Part shown: in pieces, positions 1 through 20,367 of the stretch | How the letters are laid out: the number at the start of each line of letters is the position of its first letter | Position numbering within the stretch: position 1 is the first letter of the stretch | Assembly: GCA_020891255.1 (NCBI GenBank) | Contig: BQFW01000009.1 | Coordinates: 434,001 to 498,000 of the forward strand | DNA length: 64,000 bases | Source of the DNA: Entomortierella parvispora E1425 | Lineage: Eukaryota > Fungi > Mortierellomycota | Reading direction: 5' to 3' | Position numbers and translations under genes: made by a program | Notes under the pieces: model-generated | What the model was told of the DNA's origin: nothing | Seen by the model: the letters and a program-made list of their open reading frames with translations, nothing else | The model's database searches: none

Positions 1-3
1 GTA

Positions 4-1075
4 TCAGATCTGGAACAATTCAAGTTTTAGCCAGCAAGTTATCCTGGCAGCACCAGATGGGGATCCTTCTTCGGCCATCGTCTCCATCATCCAGTCAAAG
101 TCCTCAAACTCGGTATGACCTTCGATCGTATGCAAACGTAACGTCAGAGTCTCCAGGTCCTTTAGCCGTGTCAACTGCTTTAACGGATGGCACCGATCTT
201 CCTCATCCAACTGAGAAACGTCGCCGCCGTGCGCAATGGCCCCTTGCCCCCAAACTGCATGGTCGTATGATAGAACTCCACCGTGCGAAGATTTGGACTG
301 ACAGTTGCCATGTATGCATAGGCACGCGCCAATTGCTCATTCGTCGTCATAACATACGGCCCTGAGGCGGCAGCCGCAAACTCGGCCGCACTTTTAGGAG
401 TGACCCTTGGGTCGGTGACCAAGCCTAATTTGAGTGTCAAAAGTCCTTCACAAACCCAGGTATAATCGCAATTCAAACGGATGGGTTCAAGTGGGATCGG
501 TAGCGGGTCCAATTTCTTGCTCCGATGTCTACTCTTGTTGCATTTATCGTCCTCAACTGTACCAGCCGCCAATCGAATGGCCTCCAACTCTGCTGCTGCC
601 GCTTTGGCAGCTTCCTCCACGGCTCTCAACGCCAACGCGCTGTCACGATCTTTGACAGCCTTCTTAAAGGAATCACTCATACTCATAAACTTATCGACTA
701 GTCTTCGAGTACGTAGGGCGGACTCAGGGGCCTTTAAATGCTTGAGGTACTGGTTCCAGCATAAACAATGATCAATCGTCCACTACGCTATTCTCGGTGT
801 CGTCCCTGCCCAATGATCTCAACGGTCTCTATCGTTTGTCTTTTAGAATGCCATCTAAAGTTGAATTGATAGTCCTCAAGCGGAGCAGTGACAAAGTGAA
901 GAACGCGAAGATCCGGCAACCAGTGGCAGCTGTACTCTGCCGAGCAGAGATATCGACCGCATGCAGCGTCTTCACGGTAGGGCTCCCACAAAAACGCATC
1001 GATCCTGCCACTTTTCATGAGCTTTTCAATAGTATAAAACTCTACCCTCTGGCAATGGAAATCAGTCGGTTCGAT
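4..1075 (-). pseudogene. Decayed F-box/LRR-family gene (C-terminal part), running off the left edge
   Basis: Minus-strand fragments 788-1018, 180-779 and 4-236 join only through frameshifts or stops (near 790 and at the G-run near 240). They carry WVCEGL, LKQLTRLKDLETL and DFDWMMET..WLKLE, matching the C-terminal pattern of the intact F-box gene at 6115-7584 (WVCLGL, LKGLAHLKYV, DVSWMATHWRRLE). Confidence 0.4.
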
Positions 1076-2346
1076 TCACCAGGGCCGACTAAATTCCACG
1101 ATGCGGAAGGCGATCAGTTCAGTCTAGACAGATATAACTCGCTCAGTGGATCTCTGGTGGATAGTCACACGCCTGGGATACAAGCGCTGGAGAGGATGCT
1201 GTGAGAGAGGGGTTCTGGCCGGGGATCGTTCCTCATGTTCTTCAAATGAGGGCCCACTGTCGGCTCTGCCCTGTGTTCATTGTGTTCACTGTGTTCACAA
1301 GGGACACCATCGCTTTTCTGCCCTTACCCATCAATCGGATTGTTTTTCTGAAGGAAGAAGGGTCCAACGAGATGAGAGCTGATAGAGTATAGAGTCTATT
1401 AAGCCATGCATCCATATATGCATTCATTCGTTCATTCGTTTATTCTCTCTTCTTCTCTTGTAGGTCAGTCAGCATACATAGTTAAATTCGAAGACATGAT
1501 CAGATGAACAGGTGGCTAAACTATAGACAGACGTGGTGTTGGTTTGACGAACTTCCAGAATAGAAAAACAAGTCGAGAGTGTAACCAGAAACAAGGTGCA
1601 GGTCAGAGGTTGGAAAAAAAATAAAAAAAATAGCGAGAATCGAATTCAGTCCTCCTGCCCTGGTCTATTCCTCCTTGAGACAAGATACGACATCCAACGG
1701 ACAAAACAATTTGATCAACATGGGCCAATCGATGTTCAAAGGAGAGGAACAGGGGGAAGGAAAGAGAGGACTGTCGCCCGTCATCGGCATATCCACAGGG
1801 AGGGACTCGGTGTGGTCGACAGAAGTATTGTGAACATACATTGGCTGTTGATATCAGTGTGGGCTGGGTTGGAGAAAGCCGTAGGTTGTGGTGAAGACGA
1901 GGACAACAGCAAATGAAATCGAGACGTGTGGTGAAGTTGCAGAGGCTAGTGGTAGTGTTGACTGCAATAGGACAAAATGTATCTTGACTGATAGCGAGAT
2001 ATGCAACAAGAGAAGAAACAGTGGGCGAGTATGACACAGACGAAGGGGGGAGTTGTGAGCAGAGCTTCAACAGGGCAGAAAGGGACGAGACAACGCAGGG
2101 CGAGTGGACTGAGAGTCGAAGAATTCGGGGCGATGGGCGCACAGAACAGAAGACTACAGATCCTAGATTTGGGATCCTAGGTAAGAGAGGCGTACCAAGT
2201 CCTATTCTCACATCCATAACCGACAGTTCATGACACCTGTCTTTCCAATCCCTTACTTTCCGAGCCCTTGATCTTTTTACTCCCTTGTCTTTTCAGCCCT
2301 TTGGTGTTCTTGTACACTGCTGTAGTCCCTTTGTGCTCTCTCTCAA

Positions 2347-2552
2347 TGTTGTCCCTTGATGTTGTCCCTTGATGTTGTCCCTTGACGTTGTCTTTAGATG
2401 TTGTCCTTCGGTGTTGTCCCTAGATGATGTCCTTGGATGCTTCCGTTGGTGTTGTACCCTCTTGATGTTGTCCTTCAGTGTTGTCCCCTGATGCTGTTCC
2501 ATGATGTTGTCCCTTGATGTCGTCCCTTGATGATGTCCCTTGTTGTCCTTAG
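2347..2552 (+). repeat. 13-bp minisatellite (TGTTGTCCCTTGA-like), ~16 degenerate units
   Basis: Read directly: tgttgtcccttga x3, then cgttgtctttaga, tgttgtccttcgg and further variants. Confidence 0.85.
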
Positions 2553-2716
2553 TCCTTTGATATTGTTCTTTGCTTGTTCGTTGGTGTTTGCCTAGGTGCT
2601 GATCTTTGGTGTTTCCCCTAGCTGGATGATCGGCAAACACCATCGATGACCATTAAAAAATTGCCTCACCCCCTTTTGACTTGCACCAGTTTGGGAAGCT
2701 ATAGACATCCTTCGCA

Positions 2717-2723
2717 TATAAAA
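2717..2723 (+). promoter_or_regulatory. Candidate TATA box of small secreted protein gene 1, with a likely 5'-UTR intron (~2902-3020)
   Basis: TATAAAA lies about 320 nt upstream of ATG 3042 and is conserved in copy 2 (9901-9907). CAG|GTAAGG...CTATAG|G splice-like signals are present in both copies. Confidence 0.4.
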
Positions 2724-3041
2724 TGCCGCGCCTTACCTTACAGTCCTTTACCATACCACATTTGATCTCAACATATTCACCCCAGACTCGAAACAGGGAC
2801 CGCAAGAACTATTTCAAGTGCCATCGCAAGTACTGTACCTTCGACACCTGTCGCCCGCACGCACGATCAACCCCCACTCTTGACTTATCTTCCACACTCA
2901 GGTAAGGTAGTGAGACTACGATTTTCTGATTCATGAAAGGTTACAGCGACTATACTATGGCCGATACGATGATGGCTCCCTCAATCACACCATAACATCC
3001 TCATCTAATCGTCACTATAGGGAAGCAGCTATTTCTTCAAA

Positions 3042-3302
3042 ATGTTGTTCAGAACGTTTTTCGCCTGTGCCTTTTTTGCACTGTTGAGCTCATCGACAGT
3101 TTATGTGGCTGCGAGAGGTTGCACTGTGCTCGACCACGGTACCGAGAACGGCGAAAAGTTCACACGCTACTGCTGTCGATGCGATACAAATACATGTGTC
3201 GAGACTCAATCAGAAATTTGCAAGGAGCATAATAAGCGGCCGAGCGATGGTGACAGGTGCCCTAAGGGTAAATGGACCTGCTGGAAGTTCGATTACGAAT
3301 AA
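3042..3302 (+). CDS. Small secreted cysteine-rich protein 1 (86 aa; signal peptide plus 8-Cys mature domain)
   Basis: Hydrophobic leader MLFRTFFACAFFALLSSSTVYVAA, then a 62-aa region with 8 Cys (C-CC-C-C-C-C-C). The paralog at 10226 keeps all 8 Cys. Confidence 0.85.
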   Translation: MLFRTFFACAFFALLSSSTVYVAARGCTVLDHGTENGEKFTRYCCRCDTNTCVETQSEICKEHNKRPSDGDRCPKGKWTCWKFDYE

Positions 3303-3975
3303 TAGCTGGCCAAGTCGAATATAATGACAACTTAAGCTTATTGACCAGGACCATGAATGTCCCATTCATTTTTCATGCCTATGCCGCTTTTCTCTTTGAT
3401 TTATCTCTTGCCTTGCTCAACGACAGAAGATGAGGAGAGAGCAATTTTCCTTTCCTTACAGGTAGTCTTTTCTGGATTTTCGCAATAAATTTTAATTTGG
3501 ATCAAGTTTCACATCTCTACTGGGGGTGGACATGGAAGAGAAAGTCGGCATTGATGCATTCGACTGGATGGCAGAGCTGCCTTGACATGCAGCTGACAGA
3601 ACGGCAAATTAATGCGACGGAGCGATTGATCTCCGCACTCAGGATAAGTTATCCTGACGGACCTGGTTAACTCGAAGTTGCGGCCATGGTAATCCCGAAA
3701 AATGAAAAGGTAAACTAAATTTTCCCACCAGCCATTGTATTGAATCAAAAGTGCCGACATTCATTGGTGTTCACTGCAAAAGCATGTCTTCCCAAGGTCA
3801 ATTTTCCCAGCTTTCCTCTGTTCATCCGCAGACCAATCGTTTCCACCAGCTTCTTCTTACACCACTCTCATCACTCTTCCGCTTCATTTTCTTTTTCCTA
3901 GTTAGGATAACACTCGCACACTCTTTCCCTGGCCCTTCTGCCTCTCCTTCACCCTTTTCCCATATTCTTATCCGT

Positions 3976-10662: not shown

Positions 10663-11007
10663 TTGGATCAAATTGACATTAATTTTTGCCGCCCTGTCAG
10701 CCGCATGCCACAAGTGGAGACCAGCGCAGGCGTGTGCATCAACACGCCTTGCGTGTCTGCGACCCGCTTTCGACCCGCTTGGCTGGTTATTGGGACTGTT
10801 TTTGGGTCCTGCGAAGCGTCTCCGTCGCACACGCTCACATTTATTTTGTGCTCAACTCAAGCGAGTTGTACAACACGTACGCAGGTTGACCCCCCAAAGT
10901 GCACTTTGTCGACAAGCGTTTCACATCTCTACTGGGGGTGAGATGAGTGGACATGGAAGAGAAAGTCGGCGTTGACAGAACGGCAAAATTAATGTCAATT
11001 GATCCAA
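10663..11007. repeat. ~41-bp imperfect inverted repeats enclosing ~345 bp (MITE-like)
   Basis: 10663-10703 ttggatcaaattgacattaatttttgccgccctgtcagccg versus the reverse complement of 10967-11007, ttggatcaattgacattaattttgccgttctgtcaacgccg. No target duplication is evident. Confidence 0.5.
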
Positions 11008-11232
11008 GCGGAAGCGGCCATTGATCTCCGCACTCAGGATAAGTTGTCCTGACGGACCTGGTTAACTCGTTCTACTTCGGAGCAATCACATATTGTTAAA
11101 CGTGATCCATCTTTATTTTAGCGCCTCCAAAAAAAAGAGAAAAAGAAATTTTTCGAGGATCATGAACCTCACCATCTTTTCGCTGGATCCCCTCCGCGTT
11201 TTCATTGCCTCCATTCCTACACTGTTTCACTT

Positions 11233-12168
11233 ATGTCTAATGGACACTCCTCTGACGGACCTTCGGCTCAGATGGCCGCCGATCCCGTTCCCCTTGATGT
11301 CAGGATGGCCCAGCTGGAACAGCAGTTGGCCGCACTCATTGGCATCCACCAGAAGTCAACTGGTGACTTCGATCCCGAGCTCTTTCCCCTCCAGTCTACT
11401 CTCGGATACGTTCCCAACCAGAATTTCATCGACCTCACTACGTTCGGTTCTGGTTGTCTTCTCAAAACTCCATTTTGTTTGGCGCCGTTGGCCCCCTCTG
11501 AAAAAGCAGCTTTCGCAGCAAGAAGCCCTGCCATTGTTGGCTACGACTATTCCACCCCCGTGCCACCAGAGGGACTCTCCCTCCCTGCAGAGCTTAAAGC
11601 GCACGATAAGCAGCTGTCCGACATTCAGTTCCAACTGTCCCAAACAACCAAGTACTTGGATTATTTCATGGAACGTACGTCCCGGGTGCCTCAGGACCGT
11701 CTTCCTTTCCTCACGGTCATGGAACATCTTGCCGGCATCCGCCGCCTCCTGTCCGGTCAGGCTTCTGCGATCTCGCAAACCCGACTCGATAACATCGTCC
11801 GATGGGTCAACCCCAAGGTCAAGAACCCTCCCCAGGTATCCAGCGCCTCTGCGCCTTACTTGGTGGAGACCAAGGTCATGGCCGACCTCTTGGCAGTCAT
11901 GGAGACAAATACTCGCATTTGGCAGCCTCAAGCCAAGTCCTCAGAGCCGGGTTCATCCCGCAAAGGCCGTGCCAGGCCTAAGAAAAAGCCCCGTGGTCGT
12001 TCCCCCGAAGCTAAGACAACTCGTTCCGCGTCGTCCCAACCTCAGGCTCAGCCTGAAAAATCTTCGGAGCCGGTTTCATCGGGCACGACCAGATCTACGT
12101 CTTCAGGCCCTAAGGGCAAAGACAAGTCGGGTTTTTCTCGCCCTCCTCCTCAGAGCCGGACCCAATAG
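11233..12168 (+). CDS. gag: DIRS ORF1, Gag-like (311 aa)
   Basis: First long ORF of the element, upstream of and overlapping pol, with a basic low-complexity C-terminus. Assigned mainly by position. Confidence 0.7.
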   Translation: MSNGHSSDGPSAQMAADPVPLDVRMAQLEQQLAALIGIHQKSTGDFDPELFPLQSTLGYVPNQNFIDLTTFGSGCLLKTPFCLAPLAPSEKAAFAARSPAIVGYDYSTPVPPEGLSLPAELKAHDKQLSDIQFQLSQTTKYLDYFMERTSRVPQDRLPFLTVMEHLAGIRRLLSGQASAISQTRLDNIVRWVNPKVKNPPQVSSASAPYLVETKVMADLLAVMETNTRIWQPQAKSSEPGSSRKGRARPKKKPRGRSPEAKTTRSASSQPQAQPEKSSEPVSSGTTRSTSSGPKGKDKSGFSRPPPQSRTQ

Positions 12169-15100
12169 GAGGGCGGTTAGCACGTTTCCGGTCAGCCTGG
12201 CGGCGTCTCACGGACGAGCGCTGGGTTCGCTCGACGATCGAGAAGGGGTTCAAGATTCCCCTGACCTCGATCCCACCAGTGTCAGCGACAAAGACAGTCT
12301 CGTACCCACTGTCTCTCGAGGCCCAAGCAGCCTTGGACGAGGAGGTCCTGCAACTCCTCACCAAACAAGCAATCGAGGAAGTCTCCCCATCGGAGGAGGG
12401 ACATCGGTCCCCCCTTTTCGTGATAGCCAAATCGAATGGCAAACTTCGCCCAGTCTTAAATCTACGACAGGTAAACTCCCATCTTCCACGCCACCGCTTC
12501 AAGATGGAGTCGGTACAACAAGTTTGCCGTATGATTCGGCGCAAGGATTGGTTGACATCCATCGATCTAACGGACGCGTTTCTTCACATTCTCGTCCATC
12601 AGGCGTCCCGCAAGCTCCTTCAGTTCGATTGGGGTGGCCGTCGTTTTCAGTTCCGAGTCCTCCCTTTTGGCTTGTCCCTAAGCCCATGGGTCTTTACGAA
12701 GATCCTTCGCCCAGTCATCAGATGGGCGAGATCGGTGGGCATCCGTCTCTCCCCGTACTTGGACGACATCCTCTTGGCAGCGTCTTCCAAGACCTTGGCT
12801 CGGGCCCAGGCCCAACAGGTCCGAGCGAAGCTAGAGAGCCTGGGTTATCGGATCAACCTCGATGTAACAGGAATACGGTGACATCACGCGATGTGTACCT
12901 ACAAAAGCTAGAAACTTGCAATATAATAAAACTCACTTCTTGTCTCCACTCCACCCTCGATACTCCTATTGCATGGTAGCAAAGGTTTTCGATCCACTGA
13001 CCTCACTGACCCACTGACCCTCCGACACACTTACACCCTGGACCCCCTCGTATCCCTCTTCGATCAACTCTCCCTCGACAATTCACCCAACATGGACCCC
13101 GCGACACCGTCATTCAAATTCCCTCATCCAACACCGTTCAACGGCAAGCGCGACGGATTCTCTGTTCTCGGTTTTCTGAAACGCATGACCTTTTTCTTCG
13201 ATGGCGCTGGAATTGCCGAACCTCGCAAGGTCGGGGTTACCCTTGCCTTTGCCGGCGATGAGGTTATCGGCTGGTGGGCACTCTTAAACAAGCCATCCGA
13301 CACCTCATTCCCGGATTTCAGCGAGCTCCTTGCCACCGAGTTCAGTCCTGCGAAGTTTAAGGAGCACATTCTCGCCCTCACAATGCAAATGAAAATGACA
13401 CTACCATTGAACATCTCCAACGTCATGGCCTATATTACCAAAGCCCGTGAATACCACCTGCTCCTCCAGTCTTACTACGCCGACAACGCAGTTCTCAACG
13501 ATACTATCCGTACTGCCTTTCTCAGTGGTGCACCTACTCAGCTTCGCCAGATGCTGGAAGTGGCCATTGTTAATGCAGGCAACGACACCATAGATCTGCC
13601 CAGACTCTTTAAGGCCGCGGAGGAGTTCGGTCGTATCTTCCACACTGAAGACCCATCACTCGGTGCCAAAGCACTGGCTGCCTCGGGATCCTCTGCTGGT
13701 ATCACCGACCCCAACGCAATGGAAGTGGACAATATTCATATCCAACTCAACAATATCCACAAGCAACTCGGCACCCTTCACCGCTCCTTACAGAACCGCC
13801 CCACCAACGGTACTAACAACCCTTCTCGAGATCGCCCCGCACCCCTGACCGCCGCCGACCGAGAGTACCTTGTACGTAACGGTGGCTGCTTCCGCTGCCG
13901 CGAATTGGGTCACATCAGTCCCAATTGCCCTAAGTACGGCAACGGCAGCCGAGGAATTAATCAAGTAACCGCGGGTGAATCCCCTGATTCGGGAAAAGCC
14001 TCCGGCAACTAGGGTCGGTCCGGACCCCAGTTGTCGAAACTGTAGCCAACAACCCTGAGCTAAGTACCTCAAATAAAACTTCACTTGATTCTACACCTCA
14101 GAAACATGACTCCAATCATGACAAGCGAACTCACATCCACGATGCTCTGGTTGTTCTATCGGACCGAAACCAAAACCAAACCAAAAAACCTGTTGCCTCG
14201 CCCGCTCCAGTTGCCCTGTCCGCTCCTCTACCTAGATCCTCCGATACAGATGAACCGGACCCTCTCGCTGTACCGCCGGCACCTAGTGTACCTCTGTCCA
14301 AAAGTCAGTTGAAGAAGTTGAAGCGTCGTGCGATTCGCCTACACGAATTCACTGTCCAAAAGGCAGAGAGCCAACTGCTCACTTTCATCGGTTCTGTCAA
14401 TGGCCACGCTGCCAGAATCCTGATTGATGGTGGTGCAGAAGGTAATATTATCAGTTCGTCTTTTCAAAAGCGACACCAGCTCCTCCGCACTGAATGCTTG
14501 CCCATCCCCATCCTCCTCCCCAATGGCTCTTCCTCCCTCACATCACACACCGTCCCCATCACCCTCAACCGCAGCGACTACTCCGATTCGCTCAACCCTA
14601 TTCTCTATCCTCTCAACAAATACGACCTCATCCTTGGCAAACCCTGGCTCACCAAAGTTAACCCTTGCATCAATTGGCGCACCAACGATCTTCATTTCAC
14701 TCACAATGGAATCGATGTCAAATGGAGCTGCCGCGGCTTCAAGGCCGATCACATCCAAAGCCGCACCAAAGGACTCCTCCTCACACACATGCACTTTCAT
14801 TCCATGGCAACCCTGCCCGGCTCGGAGGTGTTCCTGGCCCTTATTCGCAACACCCCAGAGCCCTCTGAAGAAACTGACCAACCGCGTACAATTCCCGATA
14901 TGACCCCAGAGGTGCGGTCCATTGTCATGGAAGAGTTCGCTGATGTCTTTCCGGAGAAACTCCCGGACGGCCTGCCCCTAGACCGTGGTGATGCTATGAA
15001 GATCGAGACCGACCCGACAGCCGACCCACCCTTCCGCCCTGTCATTAGACTTTCAATCGCCGAGCTTGACGAACTTCGCAAACAACTGGACCAATTGCTA

Positions 15101-18100
15101 GCAGCAGGTTTTATCAAACCCAGTACCTCTCCCTATGGCGCCCCCGTGCTCTTTGTGCGGAAGAAGGACGGCACACTCCGAATGTGCGTCGACTACCGTG
15201 GCCTCAACAAGATCACCAGGAAGAACAGACACCCGTTGCCCCGTATCGACGAGCTACTTGACCGCTTCCGTGGAGCACGCTATTACTCCAAGTTGGACTT
15301 GTTATCCGGTTATCATCAGCAGCGTATCTTTGAACCACACACACACAAGACTGCCTTCCGTTGTCGCTATGGTCACTTTGAGTTCAATGTTGTTCCCTTT
15401 GGCCTTACTAACGCTCCTGCTTCGTTCCCCAATATGATGTTGCGAGTACTCGATCCAGTCTTGGACAAATGGGTTGTCGTGTATCTCGACGATCTGTTGA
15501 TCTACTCCAAGACAAAGAAAGAACACCTGCAGCATCTCCGAAGCGTCCTGGCTCTCCTCCGCAAGAATGGTCTGTACGCGAAATTGAGCAAGTGCTCCTT
15601 CATGCAAGACGAAACTGAATTTTTGGGCCACACCATCACCAAGGACGGGATCAAAACATCGGCCGGGCTCAGCAAAGCCATCAGTGACTGGCCCACCCCC
15701 AAGAGCACAAAGGACGTCCAGCAATTTTTGGGGCTTGCGCAATTTTATCAACAGTACGTATCGGGCTTTGCAGGGATTGCCCTCCCTCTCTCTTCCCTCC
15801 TCGCCAACAACACTCCCTTCAAATGGACCGACGAACAACAATCTGCATTCCTTCAGCTCAAACGCGCCATCTGCTCCGCCCCCGTCCTCCGCATCTTCGA
15901 CCCTGATCTCTCACCTTTGTCGAAACAGATGCATCCGGTTTCGCCATCGGTGCAGTGCTGCTGCAGACTGACCGGGAAGGGAATACCCATCCCATCGCAT
16001 TCACTTCCAGGAAAAATGCAGTCAGCTGAGCGGAACTACCCTGTCCATGAGCAGGAACTGTTGGCTGTCATCCATGCGCTCCGCACTTGGCGCTACTACC
16101 TCGATGGAACCAAGTTCAGCGTCCACACCGACCACGCCACCCTCCGCCACTTCCCCACACAGCCCAAACTCACTCGTCGACAGGCTCGCTGGATGGAGTT
16201 GCTTCAGGAATACGACTTTGACTTCAAGTACAAGCGAGGAGTTGACAACATCGTCCCAGACGCTCTCTCCCGACGACCGGACTACCGCGAGCCTGACCCT
16301 GTTGAGCTATACAACCTCAGCGTCTCCCTGTCCCCGGACGTCCGTGACCAGCTTGTCCAGGACTACAACGACGATCCTCGACTTGGACCCATCTACAAGG
16401 ATTGCCTGGATGGGAAGGTTGCCAATGGATATTCATTCCAGAACAACCTCCTCTACTTTACCCGACGTGGAGCAACCACCCTGGCCATCCCTCGGCACTC
16501 CCCGATCCGCCTCACTCTCTTGCACGACGCTCACGACTCTGCCACTGCTGGACACTTTGGTTTTCAAAAGACTTACGACAACCTGCGCCGTTTCGTATAT
16601 TGGCCCCACATCGCCAAGGATACCCAGCAGTATGTAGCAACCTGCGAGAAGTGTCAAAGGAACAAGGACTCACAGGATCGACCAGCTGGACTCTTGCAAC
16701 CGCTACCCATTCCTTCGCAACGTTGGGAGGTAGTCACCATGGACTTCATCGGCCCTCTTCCGCCCACAGCTAGAAATTTTGACGCCATCACAGTGTTTGT
16801 CGACAAGCTGACCAAGCAAGCTCACTTCGTCCCCAGTACTACCTCTGCCACAGCCGTCGACGTCGCCCACCAGTTTTTTGACAACATCTTCAAGCTGCAT
16901 GGCACACCAACATCCATCATCTCGGACCGCGACACTCGATTCACTAGTAGATTCTGGCAAGAGTTGCACAGGCTAATGGATGTCAAACTTGCACTGTCAA
17001 CCGCCTACCACCCACAGACGGATGGGCAGACAGAGGTTATGAACAAGACGCTGAAGACTATGTTGAGAGCGTTTATTGACAACAAGCAGTCTAACTGGGA
17101 CCAGCTCCTTCCGTCACTGGAATTCGCCTATAACAACGCTGTCAATGCATCCACGGGATACTCGCCGTTCTTCCTCAACTCTGGCCAGCACCCTCGTCTC
17201 CCCACCGCTCTCCTCGGTAAACCCAGCAGCTCAGTCCCCACTGTCGATACCTTCCTGACTGAGCAGGCGACCACCCTTGCCCTGGCCCAGGATGCTCTGC
17301 AGCGTGCTCAGGATCATCAGGAGCAACAGGCAAACAAGCGACGACGGGATCACAAGTACAAGGTTGGCGATAAGGTCCTGCTGCGTGCCACCAATATCAC
17401 CATCCCTGCCGACAGTATCAGACCAGCCGATAAACTTCGACCTCAATTCCTTGGCCCGTTCACACTTTTGGAGCAACACTCACCTGTCACCTTCCGCGTC
17501 GAGCTGCCACCATTCTACAAAATCCATGACGTCTTCCACGTTGATACCTTTCGACCCTATTTGCCGTCCCCGGAGTCACTCGGCATTCGAGCTCCTGCCC
17601 CCGTGGATCCCACTGTAATTGACGGCGAAGAGGAGTATGAAGTGGACGAAATTTTAAAGTACCGCTTCTACCGCAGACAACACCAGTTCCTAGTGTCATT
17701 CAAAGGCTACGGCAGAGAAGCTGACGAATGGCTCCCAGTAAGCAACTTGGACAACTGCATGGACTTGGTCACAACCTTCAAAGAGCAGCACGGTATCATT
17801 TTTTAAAAGGGGAAGGTGTAACAGGAATACGGTGACATCACGCGATGTGTACCTACAAAAGCTAGAAACTTGCAATATAATAAAACTCACTTCTTGTCTC
17901 CACTCCACCCTCGATACTCCTATTGCACTCGACAAGTCCGTTTTCAAACCGACTCAGGTTATCAAACATCTCGGCTTCTTCATCAACACCCGCAAGATGA
18001 CCCTGTCCCTTCCCAAGGACAAGGTGCGGGATCTTCGTCGGGCAGCTCTACACCTGTTCCAGTCAACGCTGGTCCCTCTGCGTCGATTGGCCTCCTTTTT

Positions 18101-19115
18101 GGGCAAGGCCCAAGCCGCGGTTTTAGCGGTCCTGCCCGCTCGTTTGCAGACCCGCCGCCTCTTGTCCTGCAAGGACACTGCTCTCGCTTCAGGGAAAACA
18201 TGGAGCGACTCCACCACCCTAACTCCGGGAGCCAGAGAGGACCTGGAGTGGTGGTGCGACCACCTAAGGAGCTGGACAGGACAGTCTTTCCTTCCACAAC
18301 ACCCGGACGTGGAGCTCTTCACGGATGCGAGCGACTGGGGTTGGGGCATTGTGACAGCGACCGAGACCTTATCAGGACCGTGGTCGACAAAGGAAAGACT
18401 CCAGTCTATCAACTGGCGGGAACTGCACACAGTCTGGAGAGCGATTCAGGATCCAGACATCAAGGGCAAGGTAGTACGAGTTCATTCCGACTCGACAACC
18501 ACGTTGTCCTACATCACCAAGTTCGGGGGAACACGTTCATCCCCCCTGATGGATCTGGCTCGTCTCATTTGGGATTACTGTCTGGGGACAGGAACCCGAA
18601 TCATGACGACATTCATCCAGTCCGAGGACAACCCTGCGGACATCCCATCGCGCAACCTGTGGCTCCAGACAGAGTGGTCACTCAGTCGCACCTCCTTCCA
18701 GCGGATCGATCAGCAGTTGGGTCCCCACTCCATCGATCTCTTTGCGAGTCGGGAGAACCACCAGCTCCCGAGATTCGCGACGTGGCAATGGGATCCCCAG
18801 GCAGTGGCGACGGACGCCCTCTCGATCCCATGGAAGCACGAGAGGATCTTCGCCTGCCCCCCGTGGGCGATGATATCGCACACCCTGTCCAAGATGCAGC
18901 GGGAGAGAGTCTCAGGCACCCTAGTCACTCCCCTGTGGCACTCGGCGATCTGGTACCCGACCCTCCTGGACCTACAGGTCGGTCCACCGCTCATTCTCCC
19001 AAAGGAAGAAGGACACGCCTTTTTTCCCGACGGGAATCCTCTGCCCTGGACGTTGGCGGCGTGGAAGCTCAACGCCAACGCATCGAGGGTCAAGGCGCGT
19101 CACCGGCTACTGTGA
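12114..19115 (+). CDS. pol: DIRS pol: reverse transcriptase, RNase H and adenine-methyltransferase-like domain; split by the Gypsy (pieces 12114-12862 and 17933-19115)
   Basis: PIGGRL..F..W, GFKIP, SIDLTDAF, VLPFGLSLSP and YLDD. The rejoined junction reads INLD|KSVF. RNase H motifs FTDAS, RELH, SDS and PAD. MT-like motifs DLFAS and CPPW. Confidence 0.93.
12863..12973 (+). repeat. Gypsy 5' LTR (111 bp)
   Basis: TGTAACAGG...TATTGCA, identical to 17817-17927, and contains AATAAA. Confidence 0.96.
12974..12984 (+). promoter_or_regulatory. Primer-binding site, probably for initiator tRNA-Met
   Basis: TGGTAGCAAAG directly follows the LTR. TGGTAGC is complementary to the 3' end typical of tRNA-iMet; the host tRNA sequence was not checked. 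Confidence 0.6.
13092..14012 (+). CDS. gag: Gypsy Gag with CCHC zinc knuckle
   Basis: PTPFNGKRD capsid-like start and CFRCRELGHISPNC knuckle. The first in-frame ATG downstream of the LTR and PBS is at 13092. Confidence 0.9.
   Translation: MDPATPSFKFPHPTPFNGKRDGFSVLGFLKRMTFFFDGAGIAEPRKVGVTLAFAGDEVIGWWALLNKPSDTSFPDFSELLATEFSPAKFKEHILALTMQMKMTLPLNISNVMAYITKAREYHLLLQSYYADNAVLNDTIRTAFLSGAPTQLRQMLEVAIVNAGNDTIDLPRLFKAAEEFGRIFHTEDPSLGAKALAASGSSAGITDPNAMEVDNIHIQLNNIHKQLGTLHRSLQNRPTNGTNNPSRDRPAPLTAADREYLVRNGGCFRCRELGHISPNCPKYGNGSRGINQVTAGESPDSGKASGN
13988..17806 (+). CDS. pol: Gypsy Pol (protease, RT, RNase H, integrase, chromodomain), reached by -1 frameshift; carries a compensated internal frameshift
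   Basis: The frame is open from 13988. Motifs: ILIDGGAEGN, YLDD, HHCC zinc finger, DDE (MDFI, SDRD, QTE), GPF, and chromodomain EEEYEVDEIL...WLPVSNL. Confidence 0.93.
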   Translation, partial: FGKSLRQLGSVRTPVVETVANNPELSTSNKTSLDSTPQKHDSNHDKRTHIHDALVVLSDRNQNQTKKPVASPAPVALSAPLPRSSDTDEPDPLAVPPAPSVPLSKSQLKKLKRRAIRLHEFTVQKAESQLLTFIGSVNGHAARILIDGGAEGNIISSSFQKRHQLLRTECLPIPILLPNGSSSLTSHTVPITLNRSDYSDSLNPILYPLNKYDLILGKPWLTKVNPCINWRTNDLHFTHNGIDVKWSCRGFKADHIQSRTKGLLLTHMHFHSMATLPGSEVFLALIRNTPEPSEETDQPRTIPDMTPEVRSIVMEEFADVFPEKLPDGLPLDRGDAMKIETDPTADPPFRPVIRLSIAELDELRKQLDQLLAAGFIKPSTSPYGAPVLFVRKKDGTLRMCVDYRGLNKITRKNRHPLPRIDELLDRFRGARYYSKLDLLSGYHQQRIFEPHTHKTAFRCRYGHFEFNVVPFGLTNAPASFPNMMLRVLDPVLDKWVVVYLDDLLIYSKTKKEHLQHLRSVLALLRKNGLYAKLSKCSFMQDETEFLGHTITKDGIKTSAGLSKAISDWPTPKSTKDVQQFLGLAQFYQQYVSGFAGIALPLSSLLANNTPFKWTDEQQSAFLQLKRAICSAPVLRIFDPDLSPLSKQMHPVSPSVQCCCRLTGKGIPIPSHSLPGKMQSAERNYPVHEQELLAVIHALRTWRYYLDGTKFSVHTDHATLRHFPTQPKLTRRQARWMELLQEYDFDFKYKRGVDNIVPDALSRRPDYREPDPVELYNLSVSLSPDVRDQLVQDYNDDPRLGPIYKDCLDGKVANGYSFQNNLLYFTRRGATTLAIPRHSPIRLTLLHDAHDSATAGHFGFQKTYDNLRRFVYWPHIAKDTQQYVATCEKCQRNKDSQDRPAGLLQPLPIPSQRWEVVTMDFIGPLPPTARNFDAITVFVDKLTKQAHFVPSTTSATAVDVAHQFFDNIFKLHGTPTSIISDRDTRFTSRFWQELHRLMDVKLALSTAYHPQTDGQTEVMNKTLKTMLRAFIDNKQSNWDQLLPSLEFAYNNAVNASTGYSPFFLNSGQHPRLPTALLGKPSSSVPTVDTFLTEQATTLALAQDALQRAQDHQEQQANKRRRDHKYKVGDKVLLRATNITIPADSIRPADKLRPQFLGPFTLLEQHSPVTFRVELPPFYKIHDVFHVDTFRPYLPSPESLGIRAPAPVDPTVIDGEEEYEVDEILKYRFYRRQHQFLVSFKGYGREADEWLPVSNLDNCMDLVTTFKEQHGIIF
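17805..17816 (+). promoter_or_regulatory. Polypurine tract
   Basis: AAAAGGGGAAGG lies immediately before the 3' LTR. Confidence 0.85.
17817..17927 (+). repeat. Gypsy 3' LTR (111 bp)
   Basis: Identical to 12863-12973 and followed by the TSD CTCGA. Confidence 0.96.
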
Positions 19116-20071
19116 CCATTTTTTCACAGTCAGCTCTCGCTCGCTCTCGAGCAAAGTCCTACAGCTCCCCCCAGAGGGCCTGGATCGCGTATTGCTCGGA
19201 CCAGGGCCTCGATGCTCAAGCCCCGTCCCCCTTCCAGGTCTTGAACTACCTTTCGGAGCAGATCACGACCAAGAAATGGTCTCTGGGCACAGTCAATGCC
19301 CATAGATCGAGTATCCTCAACATGCTCTCTAATCGAGATCTGATCTGGGCGAACCCCTTCTTCAAGGAGTTCTTTTTGCATTTGAGCAGCGATCAAATCC
19401 GTGACCACACCAACAGCCCTGTCGATGTTTCTCCAGTCCTCGAGTTCTTCACCAATTTGGGTCCGAACGATGGCCTCAAGGACGACCTATTGGTGCCCAA
19501 ACTTTGTTGGTTGTTGGCGGTCTGCGGTTTCATGCGCCCATCAGATATTGCCCGCATTGACTTGGCTCACAGCCAGGTCCTCTCCTCGGGGGCTTTGGAG
19601 CTCCAAGTCCTGGGCCCCAAGGAGAAAAGACAGAATTGTCCAATCATCAAGTCTGTCTTCATTCATCCCCACGACAACCCCCTTTTTTGTCCTGTCGAGG
19701 CGTACAAGTCTTATGTTGCACGCCTAGAGGGTTCGTCAGTCAAACCCGTGAAGCATCCTCGCATCAATCGGGAATACTTACCGTTGATTCGACACATTCG
19801 TATGGGGGACAGGGTGGTCGGTTCTCAGACCATTAGCCGCCATATCAAGAATGTCTCTTCTCGGATCCCTCGTCAAGAAGGTAGCTCAATGCCATCCGGT
19901 CGCTCCATTGGCTCATCTCTGGCAGTAGAGCACGGTGCATCCGTCGACGAAGTGCAGGCCCAAGGGTTTTGGGCACACTCAGCGACGTTCGATGCCTTTT
20001 ATCGGCTTTCCAAGCGGACCACGACGAATTTGACTAAAGTCACTCTTACTGGTCCTGTCTCTTTGGAGTAA
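17933..20071 (+). CDS. DIRS tyrosine recombinase; catalytic domain ~19100-20068, with the frame open back to ATG 11162 once the Gypsy is removed
   Basis: WIAYC/LNYLS N-terminal domain, FMRPSDIAR, GPKEK, FCPVEAY, SGRSIG, GFW and TFDAFY. Stop at 20069-20071. Confidence 0.92.
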   Translation, partial: QVRFQTDSGYQTSRLLHQHPQDDPVPSQGQGAGSSSGSSTPVPVNAGPSASIGLLFGQGPSRGFSGPARSFADPPPLVLQGHCSRFRENMERLHHPNSGSQRGPGVVVRPPKELDRTVFPSTTPGRGALHGCERLGLGHCDSDRDLIRTVVDKGKTPVYQLAGTAHSLESDSGSRHQGQGSTSSFRLDNHVVLHHQVRGNTFIPPDGSGSSHLGLLSGDRNPNHDDIHPVRGQPCGHPIAQPVAPDRVVTQSHLLPADRSAVGSPLHRSLCESGEPPAPEIRDVAMGSPGSGDGRPLDPMEAREDLRLPPVGDDIAHPVQDAAGESLRHPSHSPVALGDLVPDPPGPTGRSTAHSPKGRRTRLFSRRESSALDVGGVEAQRQRIEGQGASPATVTIFSQSALARSRAKSYSSPQRAWIAYCSDQGLDAQAPSPFQVLNYLSEQITTKKWSLGTVNAHRSSILNMLSNRDLIWANPFFKEFFLHLSSDQIRDHTNSPVDVSPVLEFFTNLGPNDGLKDDLLVPKLCWLLAVCGFMRPSDIARIDLAHSQVLSSGALELQVLGPKEKRQNCPIIKSVFIHPHDNPLFCPVEAYKSYVARLEGSSVKPVKHPRINREYLPLIRHIRMGDRVVGSQTISRHIKNVSSRIPRQEGSSMPSGRSIGSSLAVEHGASVDEVQAQGFWAHSATFDAFYRLSKRTTTNLTKVTLTGPVSLE

Positions 20072-20167
20072 CAATATGTGATTGCTCCGAAGTAGAATGC
20101 CCTCTTTTGGTCGAGGGGTCTCCCCGAAGGCCATTCTACATTCTGCGAGGAGCAATCTCATATTGTT
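20070..20167 (-). repeat. DIRS internal complementary region (ICR)
   Basis: 20070-20097 is the exact reverse complement of the left terminus 11070-11097. 20098-20167 is the exact reverse complement of the right terminus 20298-20367. Confidence 0.95.
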
Positions 20168-20246
20168 AAACGTGATCCATCTTTATTTTAGCGCCTCCAA
20201 AAAAAAGAGAAAAAGAAATTTTTCGAGGATCATGAACCTCACCATC
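20149..20246 (+). repeat. 98-bp direct repeat of DIRS left-end sequence 11079-11176
   Basis: Identical apart from one base (agcaatcaca versus agcaatctca). Confidence 0.93.
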
Positions 20247-20297
20247 GAAGCTAAGGATGACCCTACGCGAAGGAGCAAACAAGGGCGGGTGGGAGGG

Positions 20298-20367
20298 AAC
20301 AATATGAGATTGCTCCTCGCAGAATGTAGAATGGCCTTCGGGGAGACCCCTCGACCAAAAGAGGGCA
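20298..20367 (+). repeat. DIRS right terminal repeat (70 bp)
   Basis: Perfect inverted partner of 20098-20167. Its first 19 nt are also inverted relative to 11079-11097 (one mismatch). Confidence 0.93.

Follow-up and report, generated by a model that had tools for sequence, protein, structure and literature searches.

A predicted -1 ribosomal frameshift site at the gag-pol junction of a DIRS1-like retrotransposon from Entomortierella parvispora

In retroviruses and animal Ty3/gypsy elements, Gag and Pol are connected by -1 programmed ribosomal frameshifting, as summarised in the available text of a recoding review that does not, in that text, mention DIRS elements (Atkins et al., 2016; PMC5009743). 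DIRS1-like elements have a different domain set, consisting of gag, a reverse transcriptase (RT)/RNase H/methyltransferase and a tyrosine recombinase (YR), and the overviews in which this set is described report overlaps between the open reading frames (ORFs) without discussing the translation of pol (Piednoel et al., 2011, PMC3266345; Muszewska et al., 2013, PMC3783388). The literature that we found on Dictyostelium DIRS-1 does not address translation of the ORFs either. Our literature search gave no description of frameshifting in DIRS elements, in agreement with the initial annotation of the locus studied here; the earliest DIRS papers (e.g., Goodwin and Poulter, 2001) lay outside this search, so an earlier mention is possible. 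We analyzed the gag-pol junction of a DIRS1-like element in a 64,000-nucleotide (nt) stretch of the genome of the fungus Entomortierella parvispora E1425 (assembly GCA_020891255.1, contig BQFW01000009.1, positions 434,001 to 498,000 of the forward strand), which is called the window and in which position 1 is the first letter. The junction is probably a recoding site at which a -1 ribosomal frameshift would fuse Gag to Pol, as the initial annotation had proposed, and this reading is well supported for the element family. It is favored because slip motifs are phase-specific, synonymous sites are frozen, RNA structure peaks 3' of the site, and pol has no usable start codon. The slippage of ribosomes, its efficiency, and the involvement of one or two tRNAs we infer from sequence.

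The features at the junction, in window coordinates, are the following.

11233 to 12168, + strand: gag ORF of 311 amino acids (aa) with a basic Arg/Gly/Ser-rich C-terminus, taken from the ORF listing and homologous to the upstream ORFs of 11 related elements.
12114 to 12862, + strand: 5' part of the pol frame, encoding RT (RVT_1, E = 1e-19) and interrupted by an insertion.
12114 to 12168, + strand: gag/pol overlap of 55 nt, with pol in the -1 frame and no start codon within it; the same -1 layout is found in all relatives of the fungal clade.
12129 to 12135, + strand: slippery heptamer G_GGU_UUU in the gag phase (GGT and TTT are gag codons), with the conserved core U_UUU at 12132-12135, followed by a pyrimidine.
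12139 to 12147, + strand: 5' arm of a 9-bp stem, CGCCCUCCU, 3 nt after the heptamer.
12166 to 12168, + strand: gag stop codon UAG, shared in part with the beginning of the 3' arm and located within the stretch that codes in the pol frame for the conserved P-[VI]-G-G-R-L motif.
12167 to 12175, + strand: 3' arm of the stem, AGGAGGGCG, which in the pol frame encodes the conserved G-G-R.
12187 to 12191, + strand: UCCGG, the proposed but unsupported pseudoknot partner of loop bases CCGGA (12156-12160).

The pol frame opens at 12114, directly after a TAA codon at 12111-12113, and gag runs from its ATG at 11233 to the TAG at 12166-12168. The first ATG in the pol frame is found at 12504, which corresponds to residue 131 and lies inside the RT domain. 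Both the RVT_1 match, which starts at pol residue 108, and the residues that are invariant among 17 relatives, which start at residue 77, begin upstream of this ATG, and conserved pol sequence begins about 110 codons ahead of it. The claim of the initial annotation that pol cannot be made by simple initiation is supported by these positions, and its coordinates for the pol opening, the overlap, the GGGTTTT in the gag phase and the two complementary 9-nt arms were all correct when checked against the sequence. No Pfam family matched gag, and Rfam gave no match in the region 11000-12900.

Pol could also be translated alone, if ribosomes initiated at a non-AUG codon, entered at an internal site or reinitiated once past the gag stop, and no fusion protein would then be made. 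Such a route would fit an element without a protease to free RT from a fusion (no protease domain was found), and coupled restarts may be used in this family, since several relatives have an ATG that overlaps the pol stop at the pol-YR junction. However, there is no pol-frame ATG between 12114 and 12504, and because the gag stop falls within the PVGGRL motif, any restart would need to happen upstream of that stop. Separate translation of pol would also leave unexplained the frozen gag-phase U_UUU and the phase-specific heptamers described below. We regard it as improbable.

Related elements were collected through a pol protein search (120 relatives) and a metagenome scan (80 loci), and three further loci were added. 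The relatives with names come from the early-diverging fungi Calcarisporiella, Circinella and Smittium. The fungal clade comprised relatives with a pol identity of 42-66%; 29 lineages were scored for motifs, and the overall set contained 42 de-duplicated junctions. One relative (L103) has no gag. In the fungal clade, the gag-homologous ORF is always in the pol+1 frame, measures roughly 275-400 codons where complete, and ends at or near the PVGGRL start of pol, typically with the sequence CAG UAG G.

An in-phase U_UUU was found in 25 of the 29 lineages, and the remaining four have G_GGA_AAC. The codon that precedes the Phe codon of U_UUU in the relatives can be GGU, UCU, UAU, CAU, GAU, CUU, CCU or UUU. 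Among the 42 junctions, strict X_XXY_YYZ heptamers were present 25 times in the gag phase, versus 7 and 5 times in the other two phases, and 37 junctions had an in-phase slip motif. The strict in-phase heptamer is present in the element studied here and in 18 other lineages, the remaining lineages having the in-phase U_UUU alone, and six lineages, including the window element, have the canonical G_GGU_UUU. By comparison, the frequency of strict in-phase heptamers in the upstream part of gag is 0.0049 per codon, which gives an expectation of about 0.09 in the 18 positions of the overlap. More distant DIRS junctions have U_UUA_AAC, U_UUU_UUA, A_AAA_AAC or C_CCA_AAC in phase.

The strongest single test for the slip site is the freezing of its synonymous positions. 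At the slip-site Phe, UUU was used in 25 of 25 lineages and the preceding wobble base was U in all 25, whereas elsewhere in gag Phe is encoded by UUU in 38% of cases (62% UUC) and third positions are U in 25%. Codon choice was also compared over 19 well-conserved columns of a gag alignment of 12 lineages. The slip-site column was the only one that was fixed (UUU in 10/10, preceded by U in 10/10); in the 18 other conserved columns both the codons and the wobble bases before them varied, the second conserved Phe being encoded by UUU in five and UUC in five sequences. The frozen UUU points to a constraint at the nucleotide level, in the gag phase, within a region of gag that is otherwise poorly conserved and of low complexity.

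The region 3' of the slip site is a peak of predicted RNA stability in the family. Of all 45-nt segments from -200 to +200, the one directly after the heptamer is the most stable (mean over the 29 lineages -12.7 kcal/mol; flanking segments, about -5.5). This maximum is narrow and lies at offset 0, where the GC fraction rises to 0.64 (versus 0.50). Ranked by stability within their own element, the downstream 60 nt fall in the top 10% in 17 of the 29 lineages. Stems of 10-13 bp that follow a 5-6 nt spacer occur in some lineages; an example is the 13-bp stem of L026, which shows a compensatory A-U to G-C exchange with L027. No consensus structure emerged from a global RNAalifold analysis of 14 junctions, as the hairpins differ from lineage to lineage and do not align.

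In the window element, CGCCCTCCT (12139-12147) is the exact reverse complement of AGGAGGGCG (12167-12175), and both arms are GC-rich. A perfect stem of at least 9 bp that begins at most 9 nt from the heptamer was obtained in 0.27% of shuffled sequences. At this position the nearest relatives L022, L047 and L090 retain a helix of 8 bp, which differs by a single compensatory exchange (U-A to C-G) that is synonymous in pol. The H-type pseudoknot that had been suggested together with the stem was rejected as unsupported: CCGGA and TCCGG are indeed complementary, but shuffled sequences yield a 5-bp pairing of this kind 44% of the time, and L022 shows no complementarity between the homologous bases.

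Several observations weigh against the frameshift reading or against parts of it. The lineages are related, and the counts given above are not independent events. The G_GGU_UUU heptamer on which the initial annotation relied is present in phase in this element, but the core that is conserved family-wide is U_UUU_Y and not the full heptamer. Half of the lineages lack a P-site codon that could re-pair, and the classical tandem-slip model does not fit them; in the majority of relatives, re-pairing of this codon would be poor. The excess of stability over dinucleotide-shuffled sequences is weak (mean z = -0.55 versus -0.03, p = 0.08), and therefore much of the stability signal is local GC-rich composition. 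A sub-clade with sites of the U_UCU_UUU type (L031, L038, L041, L043, L044 and L060) has no stable hairpin. As for the window copy, its folding energy is unremarkable (z = 0.01 over 72 nt; z = -1.4 over 50 nt). Conservation and covariation among relatives, to which the initial annotation looked for confirmation, gave a divided answer, with the in-phase U_UUU retained in 25/29 lineages but the covariation of the window stem limited to one pair in four distinct sequences, which is not significant. The spacer of 3 nt between heptamer and stem is short. Structures that stimulate -1 frameshifting usually follow after a spacer of 5-9 nt.

These points bear on how the slip would take place. It might be a single-tRNA slip of tRNA-Phe on U_UUU, with the GGG incidental and the stimulator a general GC-rich structure or G-rich sequence. 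That U_UUU_Y alone is conserved while the preceding codons vary would agree with this, as would the differences between lineages in stem sequence and register, the lack of a consensus in the global alignment, and the GC peak (0.64 versus 0.50), which explains much of the stability. A slip on two tRNAs is suggested instead by the fully canonical G_GGU_UUU in six lineages including the window element, by G_GGA_AAC in four others, and by the five-fold enrichment of strict heptamers in phase. Moreover, mismatches in the P-site are tolerated at some known tandem sites, according to the available text of Atkins et al. (2016; PMC5009743). We consider the single-tRNA form possible but somewhat doubtful.

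The -1 frameshift that we favor would proceed as follows. Ribosomes translating gag would reach G_GGU_UUU at 12129-12135 and be slowed by the GC-rich helix 3-4 nt downstream, the 3' arm of which covers the gag stop and the G-G-R codons of pol. A fraction of them would slip back by one base, with tRNA-Phe re-pairing from UUU to UUU and, in the window element, tRNA-Gly re-pairing from GGU to GGG. The slipped ribosomes would continue in the pol frame and produce a Gag-RT/RNase H/methyltransferase fusion, and the remaining ribosomes would stop at the UAG and release Gag alone.

Gag and pol could alternatively be fused at the mRNA level, by an intron that removes part of gag and lands in the overlap in the pol frame. 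The sequence does offer sites for this: a pyrimidine tract with a terminal CAG makes up the 5' arm of the stem, an acceptor-like CCUCCUCCUCAG is located at 12153, so that exon 2 would start at 12154, and gag contains one donor-like GTRNGY site (GTACGT, 11675), which would define a frame-compatible intron of 479 nt. Some distant DIRS loci also have GT[AG]AGT right after the gag stop. However, such splicing would cost gag the conserved C-terminal half of its core, and the relatives conserve U_UUU but neither the donor nor the acceptor. A canonical heptamer is present even where the overlap leaves little room, at 30 nt (L032-34), 45 nt (L048/49) or 51-54 nt (the family of the window element), and related contigs of near full element length, of unestablished source type, keep the junction unspliced. 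No poly(A) was present at the contig ends of the related metagenome loci, although the ends of these contigs do not decide whether they are transcripts. Splicing at this junction appears very unlikely. As a separate observation, motifs of the GT[AG]AGT type lie a few bases past the gag stop in the distant DIRS-like loci L064 (1949-1990), L065, L076, L081 and L085, where they may represent introns inside the elements.

The features of the whole element and of a second DIRS family in the same genome are the following.

11070 to 12862 and 17928 to 20367, + strand: DIRS1-like element, split in two by a Ty3/gypsy insertion.
11070 to 12862, + strand: left part of the DIRS element, with the left terminus, gag and 5' pol (RT); 98.5% identity to the copy on contig C13; terminal and inverted repeats.
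12863 to 17927, + strand: Ty3/gypsy chromovirus of 5065 nt inserted in the DIRS RT, with identical 111-nt long terminal repeats (LTRs; TG..CA) and a target duplication CTCGA.
17928 to 19115, + strand: 3' part of the pol frame, with the rest of RT, the RNase H region and a Dam-like methyltransferase (PF05869, E = 7e-5, under the Pfam cut-off), ending with TGA at 19113-19115.
17928 to 20367, + strand: right part of the DIRS element, which contains the right terminus and a putative internal complementary region.
19118 to 20071, + strand: putative YR region in the third frame, with invariant R, K, R, W and Y in Cre-like spacing, weak Cre matches and a stop-free frame.
L008-L014, on contigs C1, C5, C6, C9 and C13 (e.g., L014:1147-1200): loci of the second DIRS family.

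An uninterrupted second copy of the element is present on contig C13 (4237 nt, 98% identical). Both copies are defective: in the window copy the RT is interrupted and pol ends early at 19113-19115, and pol of the C13 copy carries an in-frame stop (element position 2683-2685). The two copies differ within the span of the frameshift site at a single position, 12162 in the loop (C/G). The pol frame of the window copy runs into a stop at 12879-12881, within the gypsy LTR. The Gag-Pol fusion of about 937 aa that the initial annotation predicted is therefore not encoded by this copy as it stands, since it could be attained solely by skipping the 5065-nt gypsy insertion. The window copy is dead, and its frameshift signal is an intact relic with pol broken 730 nt downstream.

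In the inserted chromovirus, gag includes a zinc knuckle, and pol combines protease, RT, RNase H, integrase and chromodomain. The insertion is recent, as the LTRs are identical and flanked by the 5-bp target duplication CTCGA. LTRs of 111 nt are unusually short.

Because of the decay of these copies, it must be considered whether the change of frame is itself damage, caused by an indel of 1 nt as a copy decays or by a polymerase that stutters on the T-run. The window copy is dead through the gypsy insertion and the stop at 19113-19115, the C13 copy has its own in-frame pol stop, and T-runs are indel-prone, as illustrated by one related locus. In this locus, L053 (2575-2600), gag and pol are in one frame, with a run of 7 T versus 6 T in its relative L051. 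The upstream part of L053 was identified as gag by profile comparison (probability 97.5%); the locus is otherwise decayed and has an in-frame stop in pol. Since a single extra T puts L053 in one frame, a stop-free connection of the two frames is possible at precisely the predicted site. Against damage, the -1 relation is shared by the two genomic copies, about 25 distinct lineages related to them and the second family, and the T-run is only 4-5 nt in most lineages. T-runs of this length are too short for efficient transcriptional slippage. With the layout present in dozens of lineages and the T-runs this short, mutation or transcriptional stuttering is excluded as a general cause, and overall we find an explanation by damage extremely unlikely.

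The second DIRS family in the same genome has at least seven copies and about 74% nucleotide identity in a 90-nt RT stretch. It carries G_GGA_AAC in the gag phase, followed after a 6-nt spacer by a stem with the gag stop in its loop, and it has a long third frame too.

The host of the predicted frameshift site is a DIRS1-like tyrosine-recombinase retrotransposon. Its signature consists of an RT, a Dam-like domain and a Cre-like R-K-R-W-Y set in the third frame, together with putative inverted termini and a putative internal complementary region. RVT_1 matches ranged from E = 1e-19 to 4e-22; the Dam match (PF05869, E = 7e-5) is under the cut-off here and is listed for many relatives. RNase H was not detected separately by Pfam, and a Pfam search of the DIRS parts found no integrase or protease domain. 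As a single sequence, the YR region gave no match in Pfam or the PDB, and a profile of 12 relatives gave weak matches to Cre (E = 0.16). The spacing of its invariant residues R140, K168, R262, W285 and Y295 is like that of the Cre residues R173, K201, R292, W315 and Y324. The repeats comprise 29-nt inverted repeats, which link the left end with an internal position not far from the right end, a pair of 70-nt inverted repeats and a direct repeat of 98 nt. The segment 20168-20297, which lies between 70-nt perfect inverted arms (20098-20167 and 20298-20367), has opposite orientations in the window and C13 copies. This part of the element, close to its right end, behaves as if it could invert. The predicted domain set, the putative inverted termini and the putative internal complementary region are as described for DIRS1-like elements (PMC3266345, PMC3783388). 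This also holds for the long overlap of pol and YR ORFs, which is reported for all five fungal elements annotated there. In contrast to those elements, the YR frame is open here across gag as well, and so over nearly the entire element.

This third frame (pol+2) ends in the tyrosine recombinase and covers 11162-12862 and 17928-20071 in the window. It comprises 1311 codons in the C13 copy (L021, element positions 3-3938) and 1200-1350 codons in more than 20 related lineages (L022-L104). In synonymous shuffles, 15.8 third-frame stops are expected over pol and 2.8 over gag, whereas none was observed over either. A long overlap of pol and YR is known for fungal DIRS elements (PMC3266345), and in comparison with it the stop-free extension over gag may be new.

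The 5' ends of the relatives give an indication of how this frame might be expressed. In most of them, the next ATG after that of gag follows at 4-60 nt, with none between, and is in the third frame (seen at the 5' ends of L022, L023, L028, L030-L032, L035, L038, L041, L042, L048 and L072). Their gag ATG often has a pyrimidine at -3, and the third-frame ATG has an A at this position. This is a layout for leaky scanning and could be the start of a long YR-frame protein. In the window the order is reversed, with the third-frame ATG at 11162 ahead of the gag ATG at 11233. At the other end of pol, a third-frame ATG overlaps or abuts the pol stop in an AUGA-like arrangement in L028, L030, L032, L041, L025 and L022, which suggests a stop-restart route to the recombinase; the family of the window element has no such ATG. 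A conserved in-phase motif that could act as a second slip site was not found at the pol-to-YR junction. A tentative and rather speculative reading is that the clade uses all three frames over nearly its whole length. Gag would be made from the first AUG, Gag-Pol by a -1 slip on U_UUU_Y (with one tRNA in most lineages), and an overprinted YR protein of 1200-1350 aa by leaky scanning to the next AUG, a few to 60 nt further on.

For the decoding of overlapping DIRS ORFs, a conserved and phase-locked slip site offers a concrete answer with respect to Gag-Pol. The mechanism would be the classical -1 frameshift of retroelement gag-pol, and as far as the literature was searched the novelty is its occurrence in the DIRS class, by which -1 frameshifting would be extended from integrase-bearing retroelements to the tyrosine-recombinase order. 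The gain is incremental, since a specialist would expect a frameshift in a retroelement with pol in the -1 frame. There would be a benefit for annotation, as gene callers now split or mis-start pol in DIRS elements. Furthermore, a permanent Gag-RT fusion, to be expected where there is no protease, would bear on particle organisation and cDNA synthesis.

In contrast to retroviruses and animal Ty3/gypsy elements, no protease or DDE integrase domain was detected in the DIRS element, so its fusion protein would stay uncleaved. The family conserves U_UUU_Y alone, and the spacer here is 3 nt. The shared properties are a pol in the -1 frame without a start codon, an in-phase X_XXY_YYZ motif in the overlap, a predicted GC-rich helix just downstream, and the predicted production of a Gag and Gag-Pol pair from one mRNA. 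The HIV-1 site likewise consists of a heptamer, U_UUU_UUA, and a stem-loop.

Closer counterparts of the heptamer are found in RNA viruses. G_GGU_UUU and G_GGA_AAC are shift sites of plant luteo-like and umbra-like viruses, and the yeast totivirus L-A uses G_GGU_UUA with a pseudoknot. These viral sites produce polymerase fusions and have experimentally defined stimulators, either a long-range kissing interaction or a pseudoknot, whereas the DIRS site is predicted from sequence and a pseudoknot is unsupported there. On the other hand, the heptamers are identical or nearly identical to those of the DIRS elements, and L-A shows that fungal ribosomes use such sites.

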